DNA of 64,000 nt from Epithemia pelagica (Eukaryota; Protista; Bacillariophyta). A program made the translations under genes and the position numbers. Shown here one piece after another: positions 4,308-24,848 of this stretch. Every line of letters starts with the position of its first letter. Position 1 is the stretch's first letter. The notes beneath the pieces are model-generated. The model ran no database searches and had not been told where the DNA came from. It was given only the letters and a program-made list of their open reading frames with translations. Location of the stretch: NCBI GenBank assembly GCA_946965045.2, contig OX337237.1, positions 868,001 to 932,000 on the forward strand, read 5' to 3'.

Positions 4308-4680
4308 AGTCGGTTAAGATTTTTAACTCCCCCTCCCAGCGGGGGTGAGTCACGAAAACGAAAATTAGTGATTCGATACTTCACTCGAAAGACTATTTAC
4401 ATCGAATTCATGACACATATGCGACCAAAATGTTTGCCGCGGGGGATTAGACACAGGCCACGCATCGGAAAACACACACCTCTTCCTTTTCGGTTGTCCA
4501 ACAGACCTGCATGAAAGAGATGGAACAAGAGAAGAACCGAGAGCAACGAGATTGAACAACCGAGAGCAAGACAAGACAAGAGAAACGTGTTACATCGCCC
4601 ATCTCAGCGACTGGAAAGTCCACAGAGAACGTGTGTGGTGTTCCACAACCACAACAACCACAACACTTCTGGTTGGGAGA

Positions 4681-6855
4681 ATGGAAGCTCTCGCAGCAGC
4701 AGCGCCCAGGAACCAAGAACCCAACCACCACCTCCACAACCACCACAACCCAACCACCACCACCAAGACAATGACCACCATGGACCATGATGATCGGTGG
4801 ACCAAACAAGACAAGGGTCGATACAAAAAGTTGCGCAAACGAGGGAGCACCGTCGCAACCCATCAAAGTGTCAGTGGTTTCGTGTCGGTCCACGAGTGGT
4901 ATGAATGGCACACCTTGGTGACGCGTCGTCGACGGCAGTGTGGTCCACCATTACAAGAGCAACCAAAACAAGACGACCCTGGCACTGCCACAACTACCAC
5001 TACAGCAGATGACGACGTTGTGGCTCCCCACTTTTATTGGAGACGGGGTTCTTGTCCCGAAGGACGCCTGGTCGAAGGATCGCATCATCGAGATATTTTG
5101 TTTAGTCTCGCCATGCCAACATCCACCATCACACCACCCGAGAACAAGGGTACCACCCAATTGGCAGCCGGAACCAAACGATCGCACCACCAAGCTTCCT
5201 CCTCGTCCTCGTCGTCGTCTATGATGCGATACAAGAGTCTTCCGTCCTGGTTGTGTTTGCACAATCCTGTCAGTGTCGCAAGTGTCGTGGTAGTAGAAGT
5301 CCATACCACGACACGAGCCCTTCACCAATCGCTCGTGCAAGAGCTATCCACCCTCGTGGCTTGCAACAACAACAACCACCACACGAACAAGAACCACAAG
5401 AATGAGCATAACCGTTGCAAGCGATCCTCTCTCGTGGTACCCACGGCCTGGTTTGCCAAGGGTCACTCGGCACGATGCATTACCGATGCTCTCTTGTTTG
5501 CCTCACCCGAACGCGACAAACCAAAGAATTCCAAAAAACCCAAGAAACAACCAGCAAAGATGACTCCCAACACAACCTTGACAGACATTGTGACAAAAGT
5601 TCAAACGCTTGTCTTGTCTCCCGAGGATTTGGTGCGGGCCAAGCATCCACAGCAACCAGATCCAAATGACGAGGATTGGATTGTCTCGGTGGCTCCTCCT
5701 CCGCCACAACAACAACAACAACAGTCACACAACGACGACAACAACAATAGCAGCAATAGCAACACTGCACGCCCAACACAACCCAAACTCTTTGCCTTGG
5801 ATTGTGAAATGGTGGAAACGACCGAGGGTCGGGCCTTGGCACGCTTTACCCTGATCGAGGCCATTGGATATAGTCCCAAGAAACAACAACAACAAGTCAC
5901 GACACGGGTCGCCTTGGATACCCTGGTGCAACCGCAGCATACCATTACCAATTATGTTACGCACATTAGTGGTATTTCCCCGCATGTCTTGGAACAAGGA
6001 CCGACCATGACCTTGTCGCAAGTCCAAGCCTACATTGCCTCGCACATTTTTAGCCACGATATTCTCGTGGGACATTCCCTCGAAAATGATTTGCGCGTCT
6101 GTCAGTGGATTCATCCCACCTGTGTTGATACGGCCCTGGTCTTTGCCCATTCATCCTTCAAGTATTCCCTCCGTCATTTGACGCGTGTCTTGTTGCACCG
6201 TGTCATTCAAAGTCCCCATGAACCGCATTGCAGTCGACAAGATGCCCAAGCGAGTTTGGACTTGGCCGTGGGTCGAGCGATGCACGGCACCGACTTTGGT
6301 CTCCCCAATACCAAGAGTACCAATCAATGGAAGGCCTTGACCCGACGCAGCAATAATGGCAATGACAATGCCGCCGTGGCTATTGGACCCTCGGCCTGGT
6401 TGGAAAAGTACATGACGTGTCAGGCCACTCCGGCTCATGCCTTGTCCATGGAAACTGTGATGGATTCCACCACGGCGCGGGCCGTCCTGTCCTTTGTCGC
6501 CAACAAACAAAGGAAACAAAAGAAGCGATCTCCCTTGGCTTGGACGCACTATCGTGTTTCCAATGACTCGGAACAAGCCGCCTGTTGTCAAGTCTTGCAA
6601 AAAGTCGTGGACCAAACCGCGGAGGTTAGTGATACCGTCCTGTTGGTCGCTCTCCAATGTGGATATGCCCATGTCGCTCAAGAACAAGAACGACGACGCA
6701 TTCTACGCAATCCCACTACCACCTTGACCTGGACGGATGCCGACGAACAAGCCTTGATCGAATCCGTGGAAACCTGCCGACTTGGACATGTTGTGTGGGT
6801 CGGGGGCGGAGGCCAAACCAAAGCCGCCAGCAAGACGACGACGAGTTCCGGATGA
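4681..6855 (+). CDS. DEDDh 3'-5' RNA exonuclease (REXO1/Rex1-like)
   Basis: Motifs FALDCEMVET, ITNYVTHISGI, ILVGHSLENDL, VDTALVF, HCSRQDAQASLDL. The start is taken at ATG 4681; the 3' end could continue through an intron. Confidence 0.88.
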   Translation: MEALAAAAPRNQEPNHHLHNHHNPTTTTKTMTTMDHDDRWTKQDKGRYKKLRKRGSTVATHQSVSGFVSVHEWYEWHTLVTRRRRQCGPPLQEQPKQDDPGTATTTTTADDDVVAPHFYWRRGSCPEGRLVEGSHHRDILFSLAMPTSTITPPENKGTTQLAAGTKRSHHQASSSSSSSSMMRYKSLPSWLCLHNPVSVASVVVVEVHTTTRALHQSLVQELSTLVACNNNNHHTNKNHKNEHNRCKRSSLVVPTAWFAKGHSARCITDALLFASPERDKPKNSKKPKKQPAKMTPNTTLTDIVTKVQTLVLSPEDLVRAKHPQQPDPNDEDWIVSVAPPPPQQQQQQSHNDDNNNSSNSNTARPTQPKLFALDCEMVETTEGRALARFTLIEAIGYSPKKQQQQVTTRVALDTLVQPQHTITNYVTHISGISPHVLEQGPTMTLSQVQAYIASHIFSHDILVGHSLENDLRVCQWIHPTCVDTALVFAHSSFKYSLRHLTRVLLHRVIQSPHEPHCSRQDAQASLDLAVGRAMHGTDFGLPNTKSTNQWKALTRRSNNGNDNAAVAIGPSAWLEKYMTCQATPAHALSMETVMDSTTARAVLSFVANKQRKQKKRSPLAWTHYRVSNDSEQAACCQVLQKVVDQTAEVSDTVLLVALQCGYAHVAQEQERRRILRNPTTTLTWTDADEQALIESVETCRLGHVVWVGGGGQTKAASKTTTSSG

Positions 6856-7514: not shown

Positions 7515-8930
7515 TCAATTCCATATCGAACAGGATATACCGTCGGATTCATTGTTGCCTCCGTTGTCGTGTAGCAGAGGAGTCGTCACGACAACAACCG
7601 CCCCAACAAAATTCTTGTACCGCGCCACAGACGTTACTGGTACTGCATCTCGATTATCTAAATCATGGCTTGTCAAAGATGATGAATCAGATTCGCAGTC
7701 GTAATCGGAATCATCGCTGGAGTCGTAATCGGAATCATCGCTATCAACAGCCTTGCACCCGCCCGTCAACAGTCTTATGCCCCTTTGACGGAAATTATTG
7801 GCGCCTTTAGCAGCAACCACAATAGGATCGGGAGCAGGCTGTTGGTGAATACGAACTTTCAAAACATGCTTGCCCTCCTCACCAAAATGGTTTGTCGCTG
7901 GTGGGCGAGGGACGGCCATCCCATGACTCTCAAGGTGACCACAAAGGTCTTTCATGCCCTCGACGATATCTTTGTGATTTTGACATGATGTCGTCCCTGC
8001 TCTCGACGAAACAACTTGTGTTTTGATGGTCTCGTCTAGATCGAGGATTTGCGGACCCCCCGTAACTCGTGTATGCAGGTCGGCTAGCGCGAGGCCCATC
8101 TCTTTCAAGCCTTGGGCTACTGTTTTGAGGTCTTGTACACTACAAACTTTGATTCCCTGTTCCTGTTCATCAGGTCCTTCAGGTTGATAACCAAGTCCGA
8201 GACGGCGACTCAAGACCTGCTCGGCCTGTTCTTGAGACTCCTTAGATTTTCTATCCTTCCACACAAAACGGTTGCCACTGCATATGTCACTTTCTTTTCT
8301 CTGGCCAACGAAAATGGCAAGTTCATAGGCCTCGCCCTTCTACTCCAGCATCTGTTGCTTTGTTTGGATCGGAAAAATAACCCAATTGCAACCAATATCG
8401 TAGTACTCGGCGTGGGGGCTTGGAACATATAAGATGTTTCGTACGTTACTTCTCATGCCACCCATCCCATTCCTTACACCGTTTGTCATGACAATCAGTG
8501 CTTTGTAGAGCTTCTTCTTCAATTCTGCTTTCTCCGCAGGGTCATTCTCGGCTTCGATTTTCCGTAACTGATCGTCAAACTTCTCCACTCTCCCAATCAT
8601 CCATAGGTAAACAAGAGCCCACCATGCACCAAATGGGGCGGAATCACATCCTTGGTTTGCCCTGTGGCCTTTCGTTCCGGGGATGATGCATTTCCTTCGT
8701 TGATTCTTTTCAACGGTATGACTGCTGGCCCCCAATGCAGATAGAGACGTATTTTCTGGTTCTATGGTTCCGTCTAAGGCTGTCTCAAGCGATTCAACTT
8801 GTTCACGGTAAAAAAGGCGTCCAGACTGACGCATGAATTGGTTCGCCTTACCCCGAATATCCGTCATGCTCTTCCGTTCAAAGTCATCCGCAGGAAATAT
8901 TTCGGACGCTTTAGCATACCGAGGGACCAC
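7515..8930 (-). pseudogene. Paralog of 11088-12725, 5'-truncated, with one in-frame TAG (TGG in the paralog) at 8340-8342
   Basis: ORFs 8340-8930 and 7515-8264 are in the same frame; MLE*KGEAYELAIFVG versus MLEWDGKPYELAIFVG. Confidence 0.82.
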
Positions 8931-8944
8931 CGTCGTGTGGATTT

Positions 8945-10720
8945 AAATACCAAACTGGAACAACTCTCTCCTACCGATGCAAAAGTAGTATCTGTCCCAG
9001 ATATCGAAGCAGAACAAGGAACGCACGTCCAAGACAAGAAACGCAGTACGAGCAGCGAGAAAGACGCTGGCCGCAAGAGGAGCAATCATGATTCTTCTCT
9101 CGTACAACCGGAACCGAAGCAGGGATCCTCCGTTATTCTGGCAGATGAGCTCCAACCAGAGTCACTTCCAGTCGTGTTGGAATTGGACAAGACTGATAAA
9201 AGCATCCTTGATAGGGCCAACATGAGTGTCACTGGTAATCGGTGGTCCAATGACCGCGAACGTGACACCACCACATCCACGGAGCTACACGCTTCTGGAA
9301 CGACAAATTCCGTGGCAACCACTGATTTTTCCCAAGGATCGCAACCAGCAACTCTGGAGCCAGGAGCCTTTTCGTATTCGCTCAATCACGGTCAACACGG
9401 ACAGCGACGGCTTCCCATTCGTGATTATCAACGAAAAAGTGCATCGGGCAATAGTATTCGTCGTCCAGCGTCACATGCTAGTAGTCTCCGGGACGATTTT
9501 CTCACTTCGTCTTCGGATGACGAGGAAGAAATGGATTCTCAACAAGACCCATTGACTGCCAATCAGTACTTTGACAACTCCGCTCCGATTGCTGCCACGT
9601 TGGTGGACGACGAACTTACCAACAATCGTCGCCGTCAGGAACCTAACATGTCCTTGGTCAATGATACGCATTTGCCGCCATTGGTCGATGCACGAACGCT
9701 CTCTGATCGGAAGGGTCGTCCAAATGAAACTGGAGGCTTGGGAGACAATGGTCCGGGCGACGAGGTGACCATACAGCATCCTCAGGCATCGGACGAGCCA
9801 CGACGACTGTGCAAAAATGTTCCAATAAGTATATGAGTTGTTCTGGCCATCCAATCGATTGTACTGGCCATTGTCGTAGTGACAGCGGTGGTGGTGGTAG
9901 TTCTTGTGACTACTGGTGGTAGTAGTGGAAGTGGGGAGGATGGTCAAGTCACGGTCGATGGAACAGAACAACCGGTCATTTCGCCCGTGCCTACAGTGGA
10001 TCCAACGCCGATTTTTCTCACCAGTAAAATACCATCCTCAAGTCCCGAGCCTTCCTATTCGGCTGTGCCCAGTGCATTGCCGTCGACCAGTGGGGTACCC
10101 TCAACGTTGCCTTCCACTTCCTCTGAACCCTCTCTATCGCCCACTCGATAACTTTAGGGCATGCAAGTAATGTTGCGCACCAATTTCCCAGAAGTGTTTG
10201 AACAAGAAGACAAGGTAGCATTAGCCTTTAATGACGAGTCCGCGTACTGGATGAGAGCGCTATGCTTTGTGGAGGAGGCATCTTCAGATATGGAGGAATG
10301 GAGAATAGTGCAACGGTATATGATTGACATGCATCTAATGCCACCAACGGTGTTCGACCCACAAACAACGGGTGGGACAATGTACGGTGGCTTGGGGAAA
10401 TGACACAGTTGCGTGAACTCAGTCTTTCTAGAACCGGGTTTTGGCAATGATCGGGGATTGCCACTTGAGTTCGGAAGTTTGACCAACCTTGTTGCACTCG
10501 ACCTGTCGTATTCCCTGTTTATGGGTCCTTTCACTGCCACTGTGATTTTCAAAGATCTAACCAAGCTCGAGAATGTCTTGCTGTCAGGACTGAACCTGTC
10601 CAATGCAACAACCATTTTTGGCATTCTACCGTCGCTACCAAACCTCACTGATCTGTGTTTGAGTGATATTTTTTTTGAGAGTGCGTTATCATTGATTGCA
10701 AGAATCATTCTAGACGACAT
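8945..10720 (+). pseudogene. Degenerate type II membrane LRR protein gene (paralog of 17317-20484)
   Basis: Shared PGAFSYSLNHGQHG.RRLPIRDYQRKS, TM segment and GLPLEFGSLTNL; in-frame stops at 9834-9836 and 10149-10157, internal deletions and truncation at both ends. Confidence 0.82.
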
Positions 10721-11087: not shown

Positions 11088-12725
11088 TCAATTCCATGTC
11101 ACACAGGATGTCGTGTCGGATTCATCTTCGCCTCTAGTGTTGTGTAGGTCAAAATGCACGACGATAACCACCCCAACCAACGGCCCCATAGGCGCTGGAG
11201 GCGTCACTGGTACTGCATCTGCGTTGTCTAAATCCTGGCTTGTCAAGGAGGATGAATCGTATTCGGAGATGTAATCGGGATCATCCCTGCCAAGAGGCGT
11301 GTAGTCCGCCAACAGTCTCATGCCCCTTTGTCGAAAGAAATTATTGGCGCCTTTCGCAGCAACCACAATCGGATCAGGAGGATGCTGTTGAGGAATCAGA
11401 ACTTTCAAAACATGCTTACCCTCTTCACCAAAATGGTTTGTCGGTGGTGGGAAAGGGACGGTCATCCCATCACTCTCAAGGCGACCACAAAGCTCTTTCA
11501 TGCCCTTGACAATATCGTCGTGATTTTTCTTGGCTCTGTTCCGTTTCGATGGAAGAATTTCGTGTTGGATGGTCTCATCCAGATCGAGGATTCGAGGATC
11601 CCCTGTATCTCGCGTATGCAGGTCGGCTAACGCGAGACCCATCTCTCCCAAGCCTTGTGCTACTGTTTTGAGGTCTTGCACACTACAAAGTTTGATATCG
11701 ATATCCATTGACGATGCCGAGAAGAAAACCCCTCCGAGTGGTTGAGTCAACCTTCGCTCAGCCTCTACTTGAGAAATCGAAGAGTTTGTGTCCTTCCAGA
11801 CATTTCTGTGGGTGACATTGTCGTTGTCGTCTTCTTCTTCCGCAATTACTCGTCTCCCGCCAACGAATATGGCAAGTTCATAGGGCTTACCGTCCCATTC
11901 CAGCATCTCTTTTCTTGTTTGGATCGGAAAAATAACCCAGTTGCAACCATTATCGTAGTACATGTAATGGGGGTATGGAACATGTAAGACGTTTCGTTCG
12001 TTACTTCTCATGCCTCTCACCCCGCCCCTTTCCCCGTTTGTCATGACGATCAGTGCTTTGTACAGCTTGTTCTTCAATTTTTCTTTTTCCATAGGCTCCT
12101 CCTCGGCTTCGATTTTCCGCAACTGGTTGTCGAACTTCTCCACTCTCCCAACCATCCAACGGTAAACAAGAGCCCACCATGGACCAACTGCGGGGGATTC
12201 ACATCCTTGGTGCCCCTTGTGGCCTCGCTCTCCTTTGATGATGCAGGCATTTGGATTGTCGGCTTCATTCGTCCTTCTGGAAAAAGTGCTGTACTCCGAT
12301 GTAGCGAGAGATTTAGTGTCGGGTTCTATGGCTTCGTCTAAGGCTTTCACAAGCAATGCCCGTTCTTCATCGTATGCAGTGTGTTCAGACGCACGCATGA
12401 ACTTGTTCGCCATGCCCCGAATATCTTGCATATTCTTCTGTTCAAAATCTTCCTCAGAAAATATTTCGGACGCTTTAGCAAAGTATCGACCATTTTGTAG
12501 CTGTTTTTCGAGATTATCCCTTTTGTCCCACAACGCAAATTTCTTTTCATACAACGAACTCTTTTCTTCCATAAAGGCATGTTTATCGCTTTGGTTTTCA
12601 AACGTTAAAGGTACGCTTGCCTTGAATCGTTCCAATTCATCCGTAGCTCGTTCGAGTTCGGCTTTGGCACGAGAGAGGCGATCTTGGACGAGAGAGCGGC
12701 GTTCTTGGTTTGTTGATTCGGTCAT
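11088..12725 (-). CDS. 545-aa protein: N-terminal coiled coil plus putative HNH-like nuclease region and acidic tail
   Basis: Intact ATG ORF with GHKGH...GMRSNERNVLHV..H..YYD...VIFPI..W.G and PDPIVVAAKGANN; three related copies in the window. The HNH call is an inference. Confidence 0.65.
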   Translation of the reverse strand: MTESTNQERRSLVQDRLSRAKAELERATDELERFKASVPLTFENQSDKHAFMEEKSSLYEKKFALWDKRDNLEKQLQNGRYFAKASEIFSEEDFEQKNMQDIRGMANKFMRASEHTAYDEERALLVKALDEAIEPDTKSLATSEYSTFSRRTNEADNPNACIIKGERGHKGHQGCESPAVGPWWALVYRWMVGRVEKFDNQLRKIEAEEEPMEKEKLKNKLYKALIVMTNGERGGVRGMRSNERNVLHVPYPHYMYYDNGCNWVIFPIQTRKEMLEWDGKPYELAIFVGGRRVIAEEEDDNDNVTHRNVWKDTNSSISQVEAERRLTQPLGGVFFSASSMDIDIKLCSVQDLKTVAQGLGEMGLALADLHTRDTGDPRILDLDETIQHEILPSKRNRAKKNHDDIVKGMKELCGRLESDGMTVPFPPPTNHFGEEGKHVLKVLIPQQHPPDPIVVAAKGANNFFRQRGMRLLADYTPLGRDDPDYISEYDSSSLTSQDLDNADAVPVTPPAPMGPLVGVVIVVHFDLHNTRGEDESDTTSCVTWN

Positions 12726-12947
12726 ATTCCTTTGATGTTGTTTTGTTGGTGGTCAAAGAAATGAACACCAAAAAGTGCAGGTATGTGGTAGTCCTAGGCT
12801 TCAGTCGAAGGTGGCCATGGCATGTACGTTCGTAGACGGTGCACGTTTGTGAAAACGAATCCGCGCATGGTAGGACTCACCGAAAAACCTGAAATACCTC
12901 CTTCGTGACATAGGGTAGTTTTCTCGCAACTAGGCCCTAGTCCAGCC

Positions 12948-13169
12948 CTAGTTATTCGCAGTTCTTTCTTGTTTAAACAACGCATCCTTTTGTTGTTGCA
13001 ACGCATCCATTTGTTCAATCAACTTTTGCATTAACGCAACCTGTTCTTCCGGAGAGGCGTTACTGTCGATTCGAGAAGTGCTTGGATTGAGTTGTTCCAA
13101 TTCTTTACGGATGGTTTCGAGTTTCTCTTTGGTACGAGAGAGACGATCTTGGTTTGCTGCTTCGCTCAT
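12948..13169 (-). CDS. Stand-alone coiled-coil 'header' ORF, paralogous to the N-terminus of 11088-12725
   Basis: MSEAANQDRLSRTKEKLE versus MTESTNQ...QDRLSRAKAELE; upstream regions 12730-12920 and 13175-13360 are also paralogous. Confidence 0.5.
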   Translation of the reverse strand: MSEAANQDRLSRTKEKLETIRKELEQLNPSTSRIDSNASPEEQVALMQKLIEQMDALQQQKDALFKQERTANN

Positions 13170-13886
13170 GTTCCTTTTCTCTTTTGCTTTTGGAAACGAA
13201 AACAAAAAGGTGCAGATTTCGGACTCCTGGGTTTAAGGTGAAATACGTTCCCATTCGTGCACGTTTGTGAGACCAGCGCTCATCCGCTGATGGCTCTGGG
13301 TATGATTCACTGAAAAACTTGAAATCTCCTTCTTGACTAAGGGTATAGTTTTTTCAAAACTAAGCCTTTTTGTCTTTCTATCCTCAGTGGTACGAAAGAG
13401 TGCCAATTGGCTGCAAGAATAGGGCTCTTGCTTGCATTTTGTTGAACAATATCTTGAACGCCTTTCATGGGCGACATTCGTTCTGCGGCGGATGGATGAG
13501 GCATTTGACTTAATGATTCTGTCAACAAACAGCCTCGACCACTCACGAGGACCCGTCCATCAAAAGTTGCCATATTTGGACCGTAACCTGTACGAATTTT
13601 GGATCGAGTAGGCACCACAGAAAGCCAGACATATTCATGTTCGCTGCAGAAGACATGCGGGATGATTCCCACACCGAGAAGCATCATATTGCATCCAAAA
13701 ACCTGCACACATGTTGCAATATTCATTCCAAGCAGACCGTCGTTGTGCTACCAGGAAACTCGTTTCAGTAAAATGACATTGCCCGTACCGGGACTGCATG
13801 GATGGTATTAAGTGTGTTGTCGCACAACCAGGACACTTGTTATTGTATACCATGACATTGCCCGTACCTTGTTTGGCATGGAGTCG

Positions 13887-16517
13887 CTACTTCGAGGCTT
13901 CCAATTCAGTCGGTGGTACGGTGGAAACAAATTCCGTCCAATGATCTTCGCTTATGATCCCACCTCCCAAACATTCCGTTGTGGTAGGATCGTAAAAGAC
14001 CACGTATTGACCTGGTGCCAAACCACCATCTTTGGTATCCAATCGAACCTTCCACGTCCCTGTACCAGTTGTTATTGTTGTCGAGTCACTTGTTTCAGTA
14101 TGAATCGTCTCTGTGCTGTCACTGGTCGTCATTGAGCTGTCATGCTTATCGGGTAGCCATTGCAATGTTCCTCGCACAATCTTGGGGCCATGTCGAATCT
14201 TCATATCTAATCTCCACATCCATTCTGTTTTTGGGTGGTCATCCGCAGACGAGCTATGGTTGTTGCTTTGGTTGTCGTCGTGGTACAGAGGCCGTGGCAT
14301 GGTTCCAGTTATCCACGAAACATCGTGGACAGTAAATTTCGATCGGGCTTGATCAAACTGATTTTGTTGATAGTCGTTGGAACAGTAGACAATCCGTCGT
14401 GAAGGGTCCTTGGCCACAACATACCATGGTCCTAACGCCGTGGCTTGCGGAAAGAGGTAGGGTCCGATGCCCTTGCGTTGTCCCACGGTATGGAACCAGA
14501 CACCCTTGTGTTGGCCCAATATTTGACCGGTTCCGGCATTGACAATGGGCCCGGGTTCTTGACCCAAGTAGGATTCCATAAAGTCTTGAAATTTCACCTT
14601 GCCCAAAAAACACAAGCCTTGCGAGTCGGGACGATGACGATTGGGTAAACCCCAGGCATTGGCCAATTCTCGAACTTGATGCTTGTGCAATTGGCCCAAT
14701 GGAAACAACACCCGACGCAACTGATCTTGTGTCAAGGCGCACAAAAAGTAGGATTGATCCTTGACCGGATCTGGGGCACGAAACAAACGGACCACGTCAT
14801 CCTCCTTGCCTCTATCTGGAATGGCAGTGTGCTCGTCATTGGAATCTGGTCGTTGTAGTCGCGCATAATGACCCGTGGCAATAAAATCAAATCCAGTATC
14901 CACACCTTCTTGTGCAGTATGATGAATGGAACGACAGTAATGCTGGAGGGCTTGATAAAAGCATCCAAATTTGATACGGGCATTGCACAAAACATCTGGA
15001 TTGGGTGTCCGTCCCGCCTTGGCTTGATCCATGGTCGTGCGAATCACATATTGTTGATATTCGTCTTGGAGGGACAATGTATGCAAGGGTACCGTTACGG
15101 ATCTATTCCATAAGGAGGACAAGGACTCGGCCGCGTGATGACAAACGCTTCGACAGGAATCGACATCGTCTTGCCAGGGACAGGTTCCCAAATGAGCCAC
15201 TTCATCTTGTAACCAAATTTTCAAGTAAAAGGCCGTCACATTGTAGCCCTGTCGCAACAAGAGATGCAAGGCGACGGACGAATCGACACCACCCGACAAT
15301 AGCAAGGCCACACGAGGAGAGCGACGAACAGTCTGGTCTTGGTGACTCATGGACACGAGATTGTCAGTTGTTATGCTATCCAACAAGGGCGATGCAACCG
15401 TGCTGTTTTGGTTGCCATCATTGTTATGTGTTGGAAGTGCCGGACCAATCAGGTCTCGGAGCGGTTCTGGGGGTGAGGCTGTAAACGGCGATTCTCGTCC
15501 GGTGGTGGTGAATGGCGTCTGTTGTTCTAGAACCAAGAGTGGGTCTAATGGTGACTCGTCTAGTTGTAGTAGGGAGGACGACGCTGTCATGTTCAGCGAC
15601 TTGACCGACAATAACAGTTTGCGGACCAAGTCTTGTGTGGTGTGGACCAAACTGGCCATTCCATCGTTGCGACCGGGTGACAGGGCCACTCGCAAGTGCC
15701 ATTCGTCGGCCAAGGTATTGGGGTCTTGGTGCAGAACATCAATGGGACATTGCCCGTGACATTGTCGACACCACAAGGCCAACAAACCTCGAGAGACGAG
15801 AGCATCACACGTACCGACAATGGCCACCGAATACTCGTCCTGTGGTGCGGATGGATGGGTGGTTGTTTCGTTCGTGTGGATCTCCTTGTTGGGTGGCCAT
15901 GACGAGTCCTTGTCGTACAGCAATACTTGAATTTGAACATTGGCGGTACAACCAGGAACCATGGTCGGTGGTGACTTTGCTACCAATCGCTGACGTGTTG
16001 GAGAGTGTTCTTTTTGTTGTTGTTGTTGAAGGGCAAAGTCATGTCCTACTTGAACCAAGTGTTTTTGAAGAGCTGTCGTTGTAGCCGACAAGGAAGAAGA
16101 GGTGGATGATGATGATGCGTTGGTCGTTGTTGCCATCTGTACAATACTCCACAATTCGGAGCGAATCAATTCTTGTTGATGAATCCATGACGACCAAGTG
16201 GTGTTGGTCGTTGTTGATACAGTTCTTGTAGGTGATAAATGAGTTGCTGTTGTTGTTGTTGTTGTGGAGTTGTTGCGGATGTAGAAGAAGTTTGGTTGTT
16301 GAAGGTTTGTTGTTTTTGGTGTCGTTCGAGAATCCATGTCTGGCCTCGTTGCGGATGCCAAACTTGTCGCCCTGCCATTGGGCTTGAAGGAGGCTGGTAA
16401 CCCCACGAATTGGAACGGTCGGCGTTGTTGTGGTTTGGGAGGTATCACCATCCATGCCTCAACGAGTCGTTCCATCCAACCGACACATAAAACTACAAGC
16501 ACACACCCACCAATCAT
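13887..16517 (-). CDS. mnmA: tRNA 2-thiouridylase MnmA fused to an N-terminal SufE-like domain; predicted plastid targeting
   Basis: MnmA motifs LLSGGVDSSVAL, TPNPDVLCN, IATGHYAR, KDQSYFL, DSQGLCFLG, PGQYVVFY. SufE-like motifs VPGC, GTCDALVSRGLLAL, LSPGRNDGMASL. The N-terminus is a hydrophobic signal ending VEA/WMV. Confidence 0.9.
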   Translation of the reverse strand: MIGGCVLVVLCVGWMERLVEAWMVIPPKPQQRRPFQFVGLPASFKPNGRATSLASATRPDMDSRTTPKTTNLQQPNFFYIRNNSTTTTTTATHLSPTRTVSTTTNTTWSSWIHQQELIRSELWSIVQMATTTNASSSSTSSSLSATTTALQKHLVQVGHDFALQQQQQKEHSPTRQRLVAKSPPTMVPGCTANVQIQVLLYDKDSSWPPNKEIHTNETTTHPSAPQDEYSVAIVGTCDALVSRGLLALWCRQCHGQCPIDVLHQDPNTLADEWHLRVALSPGRNDGMASLVHTTQDLVRKLLLSVKSLNMTASSSLLQLDESPLDPLLVLEQQTPFTTTGRESPFTASPPEPLRDLIGPALPTHNNDGNQNSTVASPLLDSITTDNLVSMSHQDQTVRRSPRVALLLSGGVDSSVALHLLLRQGYNVTAFYLKIWLQDEVAHLGTCPWQDDVDSCRSVCHHAAESLSSLWNRSVTVPLHTLSLQDEYQQYVIRTTMDQAKAGRTPNPDVLCNARIKFGCFYQALQHYCRSIHHTAQEGVDTGFDFIATGHYARLQRPDSNDEHTAIPDRGKEDDVVRLFRAPDPVKDQSYFLCALTQDQLRRVLFPLGQLHKHQVRELANAWGLPNRHRPDSQGLCFLGKVKFQDFMESYLGQEPGPIVNAGTGQILGQHKGVWFHTVGQRKGIGPYLFPQATALGPWYVVAKDPSRRIVYCSNDYQQNQFDQARSKFTVHDVSWITGTMPRPLYHDDNQSNNHSSSADDHPKTEWMWRLDMKIRHGPKIVRGTLQWLPDKHDSSMTTSDSTETIHTETSDSTTITTGTGTWKVRLDTKDGGLAPGQYVVFYDPTTTECLGGGIISEDHWTEFVSTVPPTELEASK

Positions 16518-17316
16518 TTTTGTGGAGAAGGAGGGAGGGTCTTGATCGTATAGCAGTTTTCGAATGGTGCAACCTTGACAACAGGAAAAAGGCAAGATGG
16601 AGAAGACCAAACCGGGTCGTCGAACGAATCCTTGATGGAACGAGACTGTGTGTGTCTAGTAGTGGTGAGCAATATGTACAGAAATGTTGCCGAGGAACGG
16701 TTCGACATTCATTGTCTTTGGATCACAACAAAGAATCTTGATGTGTGATGGATGGCGATTGTGTCGTTGGATTTGGGGATGGATGATAGATGGGTTCATA
16801 CAATAAGAGTTCTCAAGAGCGACCAAAAGGTTTTTCGACACGCTTCAAAGTCGCTTTTAGGTCTCACCGGTTCCGTACTTTGTGAGGTACACTGTTACAA
16901 AACAATCTATACTAAGAAATCAGATAGAGTCTGTTGCTCCTCAAGAGTACATTTTATTCATAGAGCATCGCAGGCCGACCATTCCTCGCCCCGCGGAGGT
17001 GCACTCCCGCACAAGATTCTCGCCCCGTTTGTTGCTGTCTCTCTTTCGCATCGTCGTCTCCAGCAGAATGAATGTATCATCCAGATTGGCAAATTGCTCC
17101 AGACATTGATGTCTCAAGAACTCAAACTACAGACTCTCGTACAAAGAAAAGCCTTTGTTCCGTTGTAGTTTCTGCACGCCTCAAACACAGCCTGCAAGGA
17201 ACAAGGACGAGATTCAAAAAAATACCAGACCTATCAGCAGCTGAATAAGGGGGCCACAATAAGGTCCATGCCAGTACGGCCGGCTGTTAATCATTTTGCA
17301 GGATTGTAACATTATC

Positions 17317-20300
17317 ATGACAAACAAAGAAAGCGCCTCGTCGGAATCTCCACCACGAAAGACTGGCGACCATGGTGGAGAGGAGAGCGAGAGTGATTCT
17401 GTACAAACGGACAACAAGAACGACAAGAATCCTCCAATTAATGAGACCATCCAAACGTCCATTCATCTTGTCATGATGGATTACCAACAACAACAACACG
17501 ACAAGTCCATACCCTCTTTGGACGAAACGACGAAACGTACCACCGAAACCAAAACTAGCAAAATGAACCCGAGCGACACTCGCAGACAACACAAGACACA
17601 TGAAGCTCGTGAAACAAAGCATGGATCGTCCACTATTCGCAACGATGGCTGCCAAGCACAAGACGATTCACGGTCTGCAGTGTCGAAAGGAGTGGATGAA
17701 ACGCATGACATGGATTCCGTCACCAAACTAGAACAAGACAAATCTCTTGAAGAAAAGACTGCCAGTCATACCAAGAACAAGTATGATTCTCGGATGGAAC
17801 TTGAACCGAAACAGGGATTCCCCGTCATTCTTGCCGATGCGGTTTGCCATGACGATGCACCCCTTACAAAAAATGGTGGAAAGGTTAACAAGGATGAGGA
17901 GAGGATTCTTTTTGACAACAAGGACTCCGACGATTGGACCGCTGACTTGGACGAACATGACGCTCAAACCAATGAACGACACACCAGAAGAATGGATCAC
18001 GATGCATTTCCTGCCACTCTAAGTATGGATTTTTTGCAAGGTGCACAACAACCATTGGTACCGGGAGCTTTTTCGTATTCACTGAATCACGGTCAACATG
18101 GAGAACGGCGACTCCCCATTCGAGATTATCAGAGGAAAAGCCTACAACCTGTAGCAGATCAACAACTGTCTTCTAAAGCGGCCCGCAGAAGCGTTCGAGA
18201 AGAGGTGTCCAATTCTTCCGATGACGAAGAAGTGGATTCGCAAGACGATTCGCAAGACAATCCTCCTCCTCACACCTTGACTCCAAATCACCTCATTCAT
18301 CACTACTCAACACTCATTTCTGCCACATTGGTGGACGACCATGGTCACCACGAAACAACAAATAGCAACAGCATGTTGACAATGGTCAATGATACGCATT
18401 TGTTGCCTTTGGTCGATGCATGAACCTTATCCGAAACACCGGGCAACAATAGGCAAGGTGACGAAGCGTCCCCACCACATCCTCCGGATGACGAGCGACC
18501 AGGACGACGACGCCACCGAGGATTCTGTCACAAACAATCCAGTGCTTTTATACGCGTTCCAATGATTGCATGGTTGCTTCTGGTCATTGTCGTTGTTGCA
18601 GTGGTGGTCGTGGTGGTTCTGGTGACGACTGTGGGTGGAGGTGGGGATAATCGTGAGACCAACGCCATTGCAGCGGAACAACCGCCCGTTCCTACCGAGA
18701 ACCCAACGACGCTATATTTCTACAGTGGCATGCCGTCATTAAGTGCAGCGCCTTCCTTTTCGTCTGCACCAAGCACAGTGCCTTCTACGAGTATGGCACC
18801 GTCCACAGTACCGTCGACTTCACAAGAACCTTCCATATCGCCCACACGATCTGTTTCGGCAATGGAACTCATGTTACGCACCAATTATCCAGAAGTGTTT
18901 GAACAAGAAGATAAAGCAATACTGGCAGACCATGACGAGTCAGCGTACTGGATGAAGGCATTGCGGTTTGTTGAGGAGACATCTTCAAAGATGGCGGATT
19001 GGAGAATCGCACAGCGCTACGCACTGACATGCATTTATTATGCTACCAATGGTGTTTCCACACCCTATTACGTTGAAAACTTTATGAATGAAAATGACAC
19101 AGATGTACCAGAATGGAGCAGTAGGATTGGATGGGCTGAGAGAGCGGATACGACCCGCGAATGTGGTTGGGCTGGTGTGGAGTGCAAAGACCTCGTGATT
19201 GATCCTTCAAACATTCTCAATACAGAATCACATGTCATATCCATCGTCCTGGATAGGAAACTTCTTTTGGTTACAGGAACATTTCCGATCGAAGTCATCA
19301 TCTTGAAAGAAACTTTGGAAGAGCTAAGAATAGTTGACTGTCCTGTGTCGAACAACGTTTTGGAGGACTTATGGTGGTTGGGGGAACTGGCACAAATGCG
19401 TGAGCTTGTTCTTCGAAGAACCGGTTTCGGATATGACCAGGGTTTGCCACTTGAGTTAGGATCTCTGACTAACCTCGAGAGACTCGATGTGTCTTACTCA
19501 CTGTTTAGAGGACGATTGGACGCAAAGACAGCCTTTCAAAATTTATCAAGCCTTGAATATCTTTCGCTGTCGGGACTCAACTTCACAAATCCCATCACTC
19601 TTTTTGACAGTCTGTCGTCTTTGCATAGCCTCACAACTTTGAGAATGAGTGACATCTCTTTTCAGGGTGCTTTGTCATTCAAATTTTCTGAACTTGCGAA
19701 TCTTCGGAGAGTCTCTATTGAGAATGCTGATCTTACTGGAACCCTTGACGTCATTCTCAGCGACAACTCGTTCACCGGTTACGAAACGGACGTGCGACAA
19801 CTCTTCTTATCAGGCAACCCAAATCTTCGAGGTACCCTTCCTCGTACCATAGGTCTATTTTCGGAATTGACCGACTTACGACTTGAAAATTGTGGCCTGA
19901 CTGGACAAATCCCAGCAGAACTGGGATGGCTTCAAAAAGTACGATATGTGCAAATGGGAAACAACGCATTCAATGGAACATTTCCTTCGAATTTTGGGAA
20001 CCTTTCGAGTCTGGGGACTCTGTACCTTCAGGACAACAATTCGACTGGAGGATTGGATGCTTTTCTGGGTGATCACAGGGACGCAGGATATTCGTTCCAC
20101 CTTACTTCTCTGAACCTTACCAACAACTACCTTCTGGGCGGTTCAATACCAACCTCAGTGGGTTTATTTACGGATTTACGCAGATTGGTTCTGGGAAATT
20201 GTGACTTGACTGGTCCCGTCCCATCGCAAATCGGACTGCTCCATTCTCTCCTGAATCTTGATTTGCACGACAATACCCTCAATGGGACAATACCGTCACA

Positions 20301-20484
20301 ACTTGGTGAAATCACCTCACTTGGTTACGGTCACGTGCAATTGCACTACAATGATCTTACAGGTGCTGTCCCTCAATCTATATGTGAGCTGCCACAAGAT
20401 GATTTTGATTATGTCTTCACGACGGATTGTAGTACACCTGGAAAAGTGTCATGTGAAATACCTTGCTGCACAATGTGCTATTGA
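17317..20484 (+). CDS. Type II membrane leucine-rich-repeat protein interrupted by a single in-frame TGA (18421-18423)
   Basis: ORFs 17296-18423 and 18562-20484 share one frame with no other stop between them. TM segment WLLLVIVVVAVVVVVVLV, then plant-type LRRs (L..N.L.G.IP..LG.L) and a terminal Cys cap (CEIPCCTMCY). Confidence 0.85.
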
Positions 20485-20811: not shown

Positions 20812-23535
20812 TTACCACACTTGTCGTTGAATGTCTTGCAACAATTGCAGTGACTCGGGTTGAGAAGAATCAAATTTCCGGGCAAATAGAAACCCCAATT
20901 GACGTGCACGATGCAAGAAATGGAGCGTTTCATTGGACCAAAAGTACGCGTCACATTGATTCAGTGCTGGAGAGGAATTGCGAATCGACGGTGGATTCTG
21001 GTCAAGTGGTGCGTTTGTGTGAATCGTGGAATTGCCATGTTGCGTCTTGGTCAATGACGACGGCGAGATTACAGTTGGATCTCCTTCCAAGCACTCTCCA
21101 CCACCTGGCTTTCGACTGGACCACACAAAAGGCAGTTGATGCTTGGTGAGGTTGGTATCTCCTTGTCTATCGAGTAGGACCATGGTAACATCATCCAACT
21201 TGTAGCAAAACGGCAACACCTCGTTGCTACGTTCCTTGTTTGTCTCGTCGTTTTCGTTGTTGTTCCATTCGCCCTGGATCCCTTTTGTGTTGTAAGTCCC
21301 TGATCTGTGGTTCTGTTTTCCCATCAAGACTGCATTGCGCTTGGAGGATTCACAGACACCGGGTTTGGTACCCCCATAGGTTTGAAAGACAGCCGGAGGA
21401 AAGAAGGTTGCTGATTCTTGTGGCGCCACACGGGCCGTTGTCCGTTTCAAATCCTCCTCCTGGGTACCTTGTCCACTTGGTATTATTATTGGTGGTGGAC
21501 GTGGGGAGGGAAGATGCAGGAGTTGCAAGGCCGCACTCCAAATGCGTTCTTCCATACAACAAAAGGCGGCATATTTGGATTTGGCAAACAATTCTTGAAC
21601 CTGGGCCGAGTGAACCATGGAATGGAGAATGGATTCGTGATAAATGGCGGTATTGCCCGAATGGGTTTTCCCTCCTCGGACCAGGGCCTCAACCAAGGCG
21701 GCATCCCCCTTCAATGCACCGAGTGTTGTTGTTGTTGTTGTTGGGGAATGAGTCTGCTGCTTGTTGTTATTCTTGTTGTTGTTATGTGTGACAAAGGTTT
21801 GGGCTGGCAATCGCATGGTCCATTTCCAATATAGTGTCTCCTCCTGGTCGTTGTCATTCTTGCTGGCAAAGTCATGAGACGTGAAAAAGAGACGTTTTCG
21901 ACGCAACAACAAGAGCGATTGCTGTCCCAGGGACGACGTGAGCAACGACGACGACGACGACAAATTGGTGGATGCCGCAGCAGCACCCAACACTTGTCCC
22001 TTGTGCAATTGCGGACCCAACCATGCCCATTGGTTCTGTATCTGTAACTGACGCGCCAATTCCTGGGGCGACCACAGGGGAAAGGAGGCTCCATCCAAGG
22101 CAATATAATAGTCAAACCAGCGGCGGCGGTGGGACGACGGTTCGTCGTCTTGTTGTTCTTGTTGTTGAACGTACCAATTCCACACGGTCCAATGCAGTTG
22201 CGACACCGAATCGGTCCCATAGACAATTGTGCCAAAGGTGACACACACCACATTGGACCAGGACGACTGACGAATCCACTCTTGGACGGCTTGGGCAAAG
22301 CGTTGTGCGGAACGTGTGGGAGAACGTTCCAAATGGACCACAATGACATGTTGCGGTTGATGCACGGCAGCAATCACGTGTTGCAACAGGACCAAATCGC
22401 GATAGGCCACCAGGACCAACAAGAGGCGCGGAGGAGTCGTCGTCCTGGTAGTTGTCGTGGCGACAGGCCGTTTCAACTGCTGTACCAGGGCCTTCCAATC
22501 GTCTTGTTGGTACACCGAGGGAGGAAGCGTCGGTCGATAGGATTGGTACTGGCACATATCATGGTATTGGGCATACAGTTCCAACAATTGGAACAAGACT
22601 TGTTGTTGCAAGTCATGGGTAATCCTTTCGAGTCTGTTTGCGGTGGATCCGGCAGAAAACTGGTTGGGAGTCGTCTCAGTGCGGTTGCTCGCGTTGGGTC
22701 CATTCCTCCAGTGGAACTGGGCATGTTGGCGTTCAAAGGTTTGAAGGGTGCGTTGCCACAAGGGATGGGCCCACTGGGAAAAGTCCTTCCAAAACTGCCA
22801 TGTCGTTGTCGTGGCATTCAGGTCGGCAGCAAGACCTGTGGGATTTCCCGTAGGAGTCATGATCAGAATGGTACAATAGTGCAATTGTGCGACACCATCT
22901 CCCTGCATTTCCCAACCGTTGGTGGTGGAACCATGCTGCTGCTGCTGCCTCCTTTTGGTCAAGACGTACATCGGATGATCCAACGAGGCATGATTGGTCC
23001 AAATTGTTTCAAACACTTGATCGAACGACTGCGAGGAGGAAGCGTTTGGACGGGAGGACGACGGTTTGGGTTCGTCTGGATGCCCTGCCGCTGACGCACG
23101 GCTTTCACCAACACTACTACGATTGCCATTAGGGAGACCATCACCATCATCACCACCCGTACTGGTTGTCGTTGGGCTCTTGTTGTGGGGGCTGCGGACG
23201 GCGTTTCCCGCGTGTCGTCGACTCGGTGGTGGCGCCCACACCCATTGGACCGTTGTGGCGATGATTGGCTCGTCCAATCGTCCAACGAGTGGTGGTCCTG
23301 GTTCTTCTCGTCGTCGCCCGTGAAACCAGAGACTGACAAGGACCGTCAGGCACAACCATATACCCAGACAGTCTCTCCACCACTGCCAATACGAACGACG
23401 ACGACGACGACAACGACGAGAAACCACAACAAGATCACAGCTATTACTGCTACCAGGACGAGGAATGAGACGTTGGCGATCCTGTGGACTGCTCTTGACT
23501 GGTTGAATGATGCACGACACTCCATTCCGATGCAT
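20812..23535 (-). CDS. GT14 (core-2/I-branching GlcNAc- or xylosyl-transferase-like) glycosyltransferase, type II membrane
   Basis: N-terminal TM; LLLVLVAYRD, VIVVHLERS, FDYYIALDGASFPL, CCMEERIWS and C-terminal FLFARKFD. Confidence 0.78.
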   Translation of the reverse strand: MHRNGVSCIIQPVKSSPQDRQRLIPRPGSSNSCDLVVVSRRCRRRRRSYWQWWRDCLGIWLCLTVLVSLWFHGRRREEPGPPLVGRLDEPIIATTVQWVWAPPPSRRHAGNAVRSPHNKSPTTTSTGGDDGDGLPNGNRSSVGESRASAAGHPDEPKPSSSRPNASSSQSFDQVFETIWTNHASLDHPMYVLTKRRQQQQHGSTTNGWEMQGDGVAQLHYCTILIMTPTGNPTGLAADLNATTTTWQFWKDFSQWAHPLWQRTLQTFERQHAQFHWRNGPNASNRTETTPNQFSAGSTANRLERITHDLQQQVLFQLLELYAQYHDMCQYQSYRPTLPPSVYQQDDWKALVQQLKRPVATTTTRTTTPPRLLLVLVAYRDLVLLQHVIAAVHQPQHVIVVHLERSPTRSAQRFAQAVQEWIRQSSWSNVVCVTFGTIVYGTDSVSQLHWTVWNWYVQQQEQQDDEPSSHRRRWFDYYIALDGASFPLWSPQELARQLQIQNQWAWLGPQLHKGQVLGAAAASTNLSSSSSLLTSSLGQQSLLLLRRKRLFFTSHDFASKNDNDQEETLYWKWTMRLPAQTFVTHNNNKNNNKQQTHSPTTTTTTLGALKGDAALVEALVRGGKTHSGNTAIYHESILHSMVHSAQVQELFAKSKYAAFCCMEERIWSAALQLLHLPSPRPPPIIIPSGQGTQEEDLKRTTARVAPQESATFFPPAVFQTYGGTKPGVCESSKRNAVLMGKQNHRSGTYNTKGIQGEWNNNENDETNKERSNEVLPFCYKLDDVTMVLLDRQGDTNLTKHQLPFVWSSRKPGGGECLEGDPTVISPSSLTKTQHGNSTIHTNAPLDQNPPSIRNSSPALNQCDAYFWSNETLHFLHRARQLGFLFARKFDSSQPESLQLLQDIQRQVW

Positions 23536-23664
23536 GGGTCGACGGAGAGAACCCCCTCTTGTCTTTGTCGTCATGGGGGAGCATTGGTCGTGGCTCGATC
23601 GCTTGGTGGCAACTCTGGAAAGGAATCCATTGTGGAGAATTGGAGTGGGTGATGGAACCTCCTT

Positions 23665-23681
23665 GGGTTAGGGTTAGGGTT
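23665..23681 (+). repeat. Short interstitial (GGGTTA)n telomere-like tract
   Basis: GGGTTAGGGTTAGGGTT. Confidence 0.6.
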
Positions 23682-23843
23682 CCGTTGACGCGCCCGCCGG
23701 TCTTGTTGGGGTTTCATTGCCGAGCGACAAATCACAGCCAATCAAAGTGCGTCACGCAGCGCCTGCAACACCGCAACAACAGCTTTGTGCGACGATCGAC
23801 ACACCACAACACACAACATGGTTCATTGCTGGAACCAACGACC

Positions 23844-24848
23844 ATGTCGTCGACACCGTGGAACCGAGTTTCACCGGACGCCTACAAGTCATGGCTTCTG
23901 GAAGACATGACAGCTGCAGAGTACAATGCACTAGGTCCTGTGGAACGACGAACTCTACGGACTCAATTTCAGCAACAGCAGCAGCAGCAACAGCAACAGC
24001 AGCTCGAGGGTGACATTGCGGCGGAGATGCAAGCGATGCGTCTGGAGATTCATGCTGTTCGAGAGACCTTGCCAACAGTGCTCGTCGGAAATGTCATTAC
24101 GCCGTCACAAGCATGGCGAATACCACAGGTTGTGTCCAGCGTCTTTGATTCTCTTGGAGTATCGCTGTCACCTCGAGCTATTATTACGGGGGAGCCGTAC
24201 CAGTACGAGCTGCCGACGAGCTGTGGCGATGAATGGAAGTTTTCCTGGAACTGGAACAGTGGCACAACCATGGATGACAGAGCTCTAGAACGAACGTCGT
24301 ACAAACCGGTAGAGGAATTTCTACGGGGGGTGGGTTTGTTCTGTGTGGATATAAGTGAGGGTCACTATTGTGTCAAGAAACTGCTGTATACTGTCGACGT
24401 TTACACCAAGAGAAACCAGAATCCTTTGCAAGTTCGAGGCCAACCGGTTTTCCTCCGACACTGTGTACAAGGCCGCAGTGATCTTGCGGTGTTGCGAGCA
24501 GATAATGAAGGCGGTTACATACTACGAAACAATGTCAAATTTGTTGTGGAGATAAAGACCGTGACTGGCTACAGACAGTCGCAAACAGGATGCAGGAGGG
24601 AGGCGCAGCTTCAGGTGATTGGTCTCAACGCGTTCAACACCAACAACTCTCCTCCTGTTGTGCTTTCCGACTTGGCAAGGGTACACCAAGTCTTGTACCT
24701 CGACACGGATCAAGACTGGAACTATTCCATCCGAGTCAGGCAGTGTTTTTCTTTTGCTGCCGCTATTCACTTCGCGAACACTCTGAGTGAACGTGCCTGT
24801 ATCTCCCATCATTTCTCTCGGCCGAAATCCCCAGATCCGGAATTGTAG
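23844..24848 (+). CDS. Putative PD-(D/E)xK nuclease-fold (Crinkler/CR-like) protein, 334 aa
   Basis: Short helical header (MTAAEYNALGPVERRTLRTQF) and polyQ, then GRSDL...FVVEIK...EAQLQ.IG...SPPVVLSDL. Confidence 0.6.
   Translation: MSSTPWNRVSPDAYKSWLLEDMTAAEYNALGPVERRTLRTQFQQQQQQQQQQQLEGDIAAEMQAMRLEIHAVRETLPTVLVGNVITPSQAWRIPQVVSSVFDSLGVSLSPRAIITGEPYQYELPTSCGDEWKFSWNWNSGTTMDDRALERTSYKPVEEFLRGVGLFCVDISEGHYCVKKLLYTVDVYTKRNQNPLQVRGQPVFLRHCVQGRSDLAVLRADNEGGYILRNNVKFVVEIKTVTGYRQSQTGCRREAQLQVIGLNAFNTNNSPPVVLSDLARVHQVLYLDTDQDWNYSIRVRQCFSFAAAIHFANTLSERACISHHFSRPKSPDPEL

Follow-up and report, generated by a model that had tools for sequence, protein, structure and literature searches.

For Lys, Glu and Gln codons to be read accurately, uridine 34 (U34) has to be thiolated at its 2-position; the delivery of sulfur to MnmA in plastids is only partly understood. 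The closest described systems are those of apicomplexan parasites. Toxoplasma TgMnmA (TGGT1_309110), which carries SufE and tRNA_Me_trans domains, was reported in 2022 to be apicoplast-localized (PMC9420914). Swift et al. (2023; PMC10219651) found that Plasmodium SufS is needed both for Fe-S synthesis and for MnmA-dependent maintenance of the apicoplast, recognized a domain structurally resembling SufE in the N-terminal extension (421 residues) of PfMnmA and in the MnmA orthologues of Babesia, Theileria, Toxoplasma and Eimeria, and proposed that this domain could accept sulfur from SufS for onward transfer to the MnmA domain. Here we analyze a 64,000-nucleotide stretch of the genome of the diatom Epithemia pelagica (contig OX337237.1, positions 868,001 to 932,000; hereafter the window), in which one gene on the minus strand encodes a SufE–MnmA fusion. 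This is probably a nuclear gene for a diatom plastid tRNA 2-thiouridine(34) synthase that obtains its sulfur by relay through its own fused SufE domain.

In both diatoms and apicomplexans a targeting sequence (predicted in the diatom protein), a SufE or SufE-like domain, a linker and a complete MnmA follow one another in the same order, the plastid is of red-algal ancestry and has a SUF system, and the relay hypothesis we favor for diatoms is the one published for apicomplexans. By contrast, the diatom proteins are shorter, their SufE domain is visible to Pfam by sequence whereas that of Plasmodium was found by structure-based detection, and the diatom plastid is photosynthetic. Because the diatom SufE domain is much clearer than its Plasmodium counterpart, with invariant equivalents of Cys51, Asp74 and Arg119 of Escherichia coli SufE, it strengthens the published apicoplast hypothesis, and diatoms, being free-living and amenable to genetics, provide a system in which that hypothesis can be tested. 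A preliminary description of this locus had taken the architecture to be uncharacterized; that view has to be given up, as both the apicomplexan fusion and the relay are already in print (PMC9420914, PMC10219651). Our interpretation is thus reasonable yet anticipated, and the finding opens no new kind of system. The diatom architecture is conserved and has been annotated automatically, with both Pfam domains assigned to diatom proteins in public databases; in the literature, we found no paper describing diatom SufE–MnmA proteins.

Plant SUFE1 (SufE–BolA) and SUFE3 (SufE–NadA) resemble the diatom protein in joining a plastid SufE to a presumed client. In these proteins, however, SufE precedes BolA or quinolinate synthase, and the client is an Fe-S trafficking factor or an Fe-S enzyme rather than a tRNA thiolase. 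A survey of plastid Fe-S factors in algae, published in 2021, covers SUFE1 and SUFE3 only, with neither SufE–MnmA nor tRNA thiolation; MnmA, missing from such surveys, would be the third client of a plastid SufE fusion after BolA and NadA. Among bacteria, Bacillus subtilis YrvO–MnmA and E. coli IscS–TusABCDE–MnmA form 2-thiouridine at position 34 (s2U34) with a D-type MnmA and desulfurase-derived persulfide, as we propose for the diatom. The Bacillus pathway differs in that a dedicated desulfurase, YrvO, contacts MnmA directly, and the E. coli pathway in that five Tus carriers bring sulfur from IscS and SufS is unusable, whereas the diatom has a SufE-type carrier built into MnmA itself. A further parallel is E. 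coli CsdA–CsdE, in which the SufE-like acceptor CsdE stands apart from the core Fe-S pathway; unlike the diatom domain, CsdE is a stand-alone protein. CsdE is linked to tRNA modification, namely ct6A through TcdA.

Several searches converge on a SufE identity for the N-terminal domain of the E. pelagica protein. The match to the Pfam SufE model (PF02657) scores 34.5 bits (cut-off 27) and is confined to the C-terminal half of the domain (residues 230–295). The NCBIfam SufE and CsdE models match the same N-terminal stretch of the protein weakly, and residues 100–320, searched against the PDB as a single sequence, recovered CsdE and SufE weakly (E values of 0.013–0.9) and over the C-terminal half only. 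A family profile was required to place Cys190 on Cys51 of E. coli SufE. A profile made from an alignment of 60 homologous SufE domains and searched against the PDB reached E. coli and Salmonella SufE at 4–6e-11 and CsdE at ~1e-8. In this alignment, the invariant diatom Gly-Cys falls on Gly50-Cys51 of E. coli SufE, G-T-x-D238-A on G-D-S-D74-A and G-R283-N-D-G on S-R119-S-Q-G, the E. coli numbers being counts along aligned chain positions.

The predicted structure agrees. An AlphaFold2 model of residues 105–312 (pLDDT 86.8, pTM 0.83) is confident save for a 27-residue insertion, and shows two long N-terminal helices, the Cys loop, the insertion at 203–229 and C-terminal helices. The top solved structures found by Foldseek are all SufE or CsdE (probability 1.00), and VIA-align superposes 133–137 of the 138–143 residues of these proteins with Z scores of 13.8–14.1 and root-mean-square deviations of 3.2–3.4 Å; IscU and SufU, which have a related fold, reach Z ~9. 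CsdE is the best or tied match in both the NCBIfam and the structural comparisons. The N-terminal domain is thus a full SufE, ~70 residues longer than bacterial SufE. In an ESM Atlas shape search with the modeled diatom domain, two clusters come nearest, a diatom SufE–MnmA cluster (template-modeling (TM) score 0.71) and a 974-residue apicomplexan MnmA cluster (TM score 0.68 over 165 residues); stand-alone SufE and SufE–BolA proteins reach 0.59–0.62. The nearest green-lineage MnmA clusters have 509–532 residues and no SufE domain in their entries. A sequence-feature search of the same atlas with the SufE part alone gave scores of at most 0.83, which we treat as leads only. The preliminary description had recognized a SufE domain with its acceptor Cys retained, while allowing that a profile or structure match might be lacking; Pfam, profile and fold all agree with it, and Cys190 aligns with Cys51. 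Its extent was underestimated, since the earlier span of ~15620–15965 falls short of the folded domain (Table 1). The insertion (window 15831–15911) is a lineage-specific segment of ~27 residues with low model confidence and variable length among diatoms, and it separates the first strands from the G-T-x-D-A helix.

The remainder of the protein is a complete MnmA. Pfam recognizes the tRNA_Me_trans HUP domain (2.3e-58, residues 402–640), and the PRC-barrel (residues 644–713) and C-terminal barrel (residues 785–855) are both above curated cut-offs. Two NCBIfam MnmA equivalogs are also satisfied, NF001138 with 296.3 bits against 284 and TIGR00420 with 288.7 against 236.95. The match to E. coli MnmA (2DER) has an E value of 4e-55, and places TPNPDILCN on TPNPDVLCN and DSTGICFIG on DSQGLCFLG; lineage-specific insertions occur at ~455–475, 555–575 and 740–820. 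Judged by its motifs, the enzyme is a D-type MnmA, with Asp-x-x-Cys plus a second Cys. The completeness of this domain had been asserted before, and the three Pfam domains, the equivalog scores and the intact PP-loop, DxxC and Cys636 bear this out.

Both domains lie in a minus-strand open frame that runs uninterrupted from 13887 to 16610 and has its first in-frame ATG at 16517 and its stop codon at 13887–13889, giving a product of 876 residues. The single unbroken open reading frame (ORF) at 13887–16517 reported earlier is accordingly confirmed by the ORF listing and the translation, and the motifs quoted with it (VPGC190TANV, GTCD238A, GR283NDG, S408GGVDS, D508VLC511N and DSQGLC636) are all present. 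No overlapping ORF of similar length occurs on either strand, the short overlapping frames being ordinary by-products of a long coding sequence, and G+C content is even across the gene (0.46–0.53).

Table 1. Features of the E. pelagica SufE–MnmA gene (window coordinates; residues of the 876-residue product)
Feature	Residues	Coordinates	Strand	Basis and remarks
Single-exon complete coding sequence of the SufE–MnmA fusion		13887..16517	-	876 codons plus stop; end-to-end alignment with diatom homologues
Predicted signal peptide (endoplasmic reticulum type)	1-21	16455..16517	-	h-region CVLVVLCVGW; cleavage VEA/W, aromatic at +1
Transit-peptide-like stretch, then Thr/Ser-rich low-complexity spacer	22-104	16206..16454	-	translation, homologue alignment
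SufE domain	~105-312	15582..16205	-	Pfam, family profile, AlphaFold2 model, Foldseek, VIA-align
Cys190 codon, putative persulfide acceptor (E. coli SufE Cys51)	190	15948..15950	-	profile alignment onto IQGCQSQVW of 1MZG
Inter-domain linker, poorly conserved	313-401	15315..15581	-	variable length; no Pfam match
Complete MnmA (HUP/PP-loop, PRC barrel, C-terminal barrel)	402-855	13953..15314	-	Pfam, NCBIfam, 2DER
PP-loop S408GGVDS413 (predicted ATP binding, tRNA adenylation)	408-413	15279..15296	-	motif
D508-V-L-C511, D-type DxxC (E. coli D99, C102)	508-511	14985..14996	-	2DER alignment
Cys636 codon (E. coli MnmA Cys199, persulfide-receiving Cys)	636	14610..14612	-	2DER alignment

A protein word search returned 436 significant matches, and the family counts given here refer to the best 120 of these 436. 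Precomputed SufE and MnmA Pfam domains are present in 119 of the 120, and the remaining homologue retains an ERVPGCVANV loop. Every match with a named source is a diatom, with genera that include Epithemia, Seminavis, Nitzschia, Cylindrotheca, Pseudo-nitzschia, Cyclotella, Thalassiosira, Conticribra, Attheya and others; the best, also from Epithemia, is 52% identical. In a MAFFT alignment of the 120 sequences, the SufE Cys is kept in all 118 that reach the site, contradicting the possibility, raised earlier, that it might not be conserved. D238 and R283, the equivalents of Asp74 and Arg119, are invariant or nearly so. In the MnmA domain, G409–S413, D508, C511 and C636 are invariant (120/120), and S408 is replaced once, by Thr (119/120). 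The linker allows the spacing between the SufE Cys and the PP-loop to range from ~110 to ~220 residues in most homologues. As far as these comparisons reach, the fusion is conserved across diatoms and is no accident of the E. pelagica genome. Together with the gene itself, the identities of its domains and its conserved residues, we regard this conservation as established.

Four homologues (P0034, P0058, P0074 and P0114; 1147–1186 residues) carry a SET domain (PF00856) ahead of the SufE–MnmA unit, and represent either merged gene models or a true three-part fusion in some diatoms.

At its N-terminus, the protein looks like a diatom plastid preprotein. The h-region of the predicted signal peptide (residues 5–14) has a mean hydropathy of 3.2, and inspection together with homologue comparison puts the VEA/W junction at residues 21/22. 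The following residues 22–59 contain six Arg or Lys and no acidic residue. Proteins bound for the stroma of diatom plastids are marked by an aromatic residue or Leu at +1. Many homologues have classical diatom junctions, such as VASA/FVPS, LVEA/FAPQ, CSA/FLPL and RIQA/WILPS. Residues 22–104 are not conserved among homologues, and the length of the N-terminal spacer varies freely.

These features suggest how the protein could work. The signal peptide would direct it to the endoplasmic reticulum, and a transit peptide with an aromatic start would carry it on to the plastid stroma. There, the SufE domain would dock on SufS/NFS2, the class II cysteine desulfurase of the plastid, and Cys190 would take the persulfide sulfur and pass it across the flexible linker to the catalytic cysteines of MnmA in the same polypeptide, Cys636 and Cys511. 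The PP-loop would adenylate U34 of plastid tRNA-Lys, tRNA-Glu and tRNA-Gln, after which s2U34 could be formed. In this scheme, the fused SufE domain would fill the role played by TusA–E in E. coli or by direct contact with YrvO in Bacillus. We infer the localization, the partner desulfurase, and both the direction and the necessity of transfer through Cys190. The preliminary description had already suggested passage of sulfur from SufS through the SufE domain to MnmA; this idea fits all of the in silico results, including the invariant residues and the presequence, although it can no longer be called new. It had also tied translation fidelity to the Fe-S pathway, a link that is supported by the genetics of Plasmodium, in which SufS acts in both processes, and one that may by analogy extend to diatoms.

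Several points weigh against a relay of this kind. Plastid localization is predicted from inspection of the presequence. Four sequencing runs from one study were found for E. pelagica, none of them recorded as RNA. We found no published test, whether biochemical or genetic, of a fused SufE domain in any organism. Moreover, B. subtilis MnmA, which lacks SufE, rescued deletion of PfMnmA in one of four attempts, and the authors favored direct transfer from SufS to MnmA (PMC10219651). This partial replacement implies that the fused domain may help without being obligatory.

The main rival to a sulfur relay is that the SufE domain supplies sulfur for building a labile Fe-S cluster held on MnmA by Asp508, Cys511 and Cys636, and that this cluster carries out sulfur insertion, much as has been considered for SUFE3 and NadA. 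E. coli MnmA, of the same D-type as the diatom enzyme, has been reported with a labile Fe-S cluster ligated by two Cys and one Asp (PMC13066941), and the SufE domain of SUFE3 has been suggested to serve [4Fe-4S] formation on its fused NadA (PMC8003979). However, the cluster dependence of D-type MnmA is disputed. In Plasmodium, moreover, loss of SufC or SufD, which abolishes Fe-S assembly, spares the apicoplast, unlike that of SufS or MnmA (PMC10219651). This speaks against a need of apicoplast MnmA for clusters made by SUF. We therefore consider a cluster-feeding role unlikely, and sulfur relay through Cys190 remains the best-supported explanation.

Another possibility is that the SufE domain serves mainly to recruit and stimulate SufS, with persulfide going directly from SufS to the cysteines of MnmA and Cys190 lying off the obligatory path. 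Activation of SufS by SufE proteins is known, and the B. subtilis replacement described above also favors this reading. Nevertheless, Cys190 and the surrounding VPGC-x-A-x-V loop are invariant in all 118 sequences, a degree of constraint that is hard to explain by a pure docking role, and we think it quite unlikely that Cys190 is a bystander.

The protein could also act in another compartment, such as the mitochondrion or the periplastidial space, or be dually targeted, and use a different desulfurase, for example the second class II enzyme of some algae. The strongly hydrophobic h-region and A/W junction are, however, typical of diatom stromal import, canonical ASAF-type junctions occur in many homologues, and the apicomplexan counterparts are apicoplast proteins. 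A site of action outside the plastid thus seems improbable.

Transcript evidence comes from relatives. Four of the listed homologues are complete MMETSP transcriptome ORFs from other diatoms, so both domains are on one mRNA in those species; in E. pelagica, a single transcript is presumed by extension. The contigs of the four E. pelagica runs were compared over window 12900–17400 (4,501 letters). They span genes and most spacers alike, carry allelic variants and show no joints. We rejected the runs as RNA evidence; covering genes and most spacers, with allelic variants, they look like DNA. One run, X4, of unrecorded kind and with a depth of 2–4, has pieces only inside ORFs (13827–15876, in the SufE–MnmA gene; 13065–13304; and 17152–17302) and none in the spacer at 16524–17127. 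This run may be RNA, although confinement to ORFs proves nothing. A second allele is represented in the contigs, and in window 13500–15730 it shows 28 listed differences in the coding sequence, 19 synonymous and 9 not, the pattern of a gene under purifying selection. The second allele also lacks 10 bp at 13544, shortly beyond the stop codon. That the long ORF is an artefact, with two adjacent genes read as one or a gene in decay, could draw on the lack of RNA data for E. pelagica but is hardly credible and already in effect refuted, as the frame is unbroken, the domain order is identical in 120/120 listed homologues, complete transcripts included, every catalytic residue is retained and the allelic differences are largely synonymous.

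More broadly, we put forward tentatively that the fusion had a single origin early in the evolution of complex plastids derived from red algae, that the diatom and apicomplexan proteins share it by common descent, and that it provides a general route for SufS sulfur to tRNA. A single ancient fusion, if real, would account for a feature of Plasmodium, in which the apicoplast is maintained without stand-alone SufE but not without SufS or MnmA (PMC10219651). Transformable diatoms would in that case be a tractable test system for a domain of an essential apicoplast protein.

We also scanned bacterial and archaeal genomes (185,579 species, one genome each) with two peptide patterns, which bias the sample, and inspected the best 80 mnmA loci. 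None of these 80 encodes an N-terminally extended MnmA or lies within 3 kb of a SufE-like ORF. No cyanobacteria are among them, and a pattern-biased sample permits no conclusion about a cyanobacterial or other origin. The 80 loci, at 38–43% identity, come from metagenome-assembled genomes of Pseudomonadota and from Dependentiae/Babeliales, Peregrinibacteria, Ignavibacteria and Spirochaetes.

The neighboring ORFs give no functional context for the SufE–MnmA gene, and linkage is not expected in a eukaryote. Pfam matched none of the other long ORFs within 10 kb (4552–6855, 8799–9836, 11088–12725, 17296–18423, 20812–23574 and 23559–24848), apart from a plus-strand ORF at window 18562–20484 that encodes a 640-residue leucine-rich repeat protein (LRR_14, 5.8e-14).

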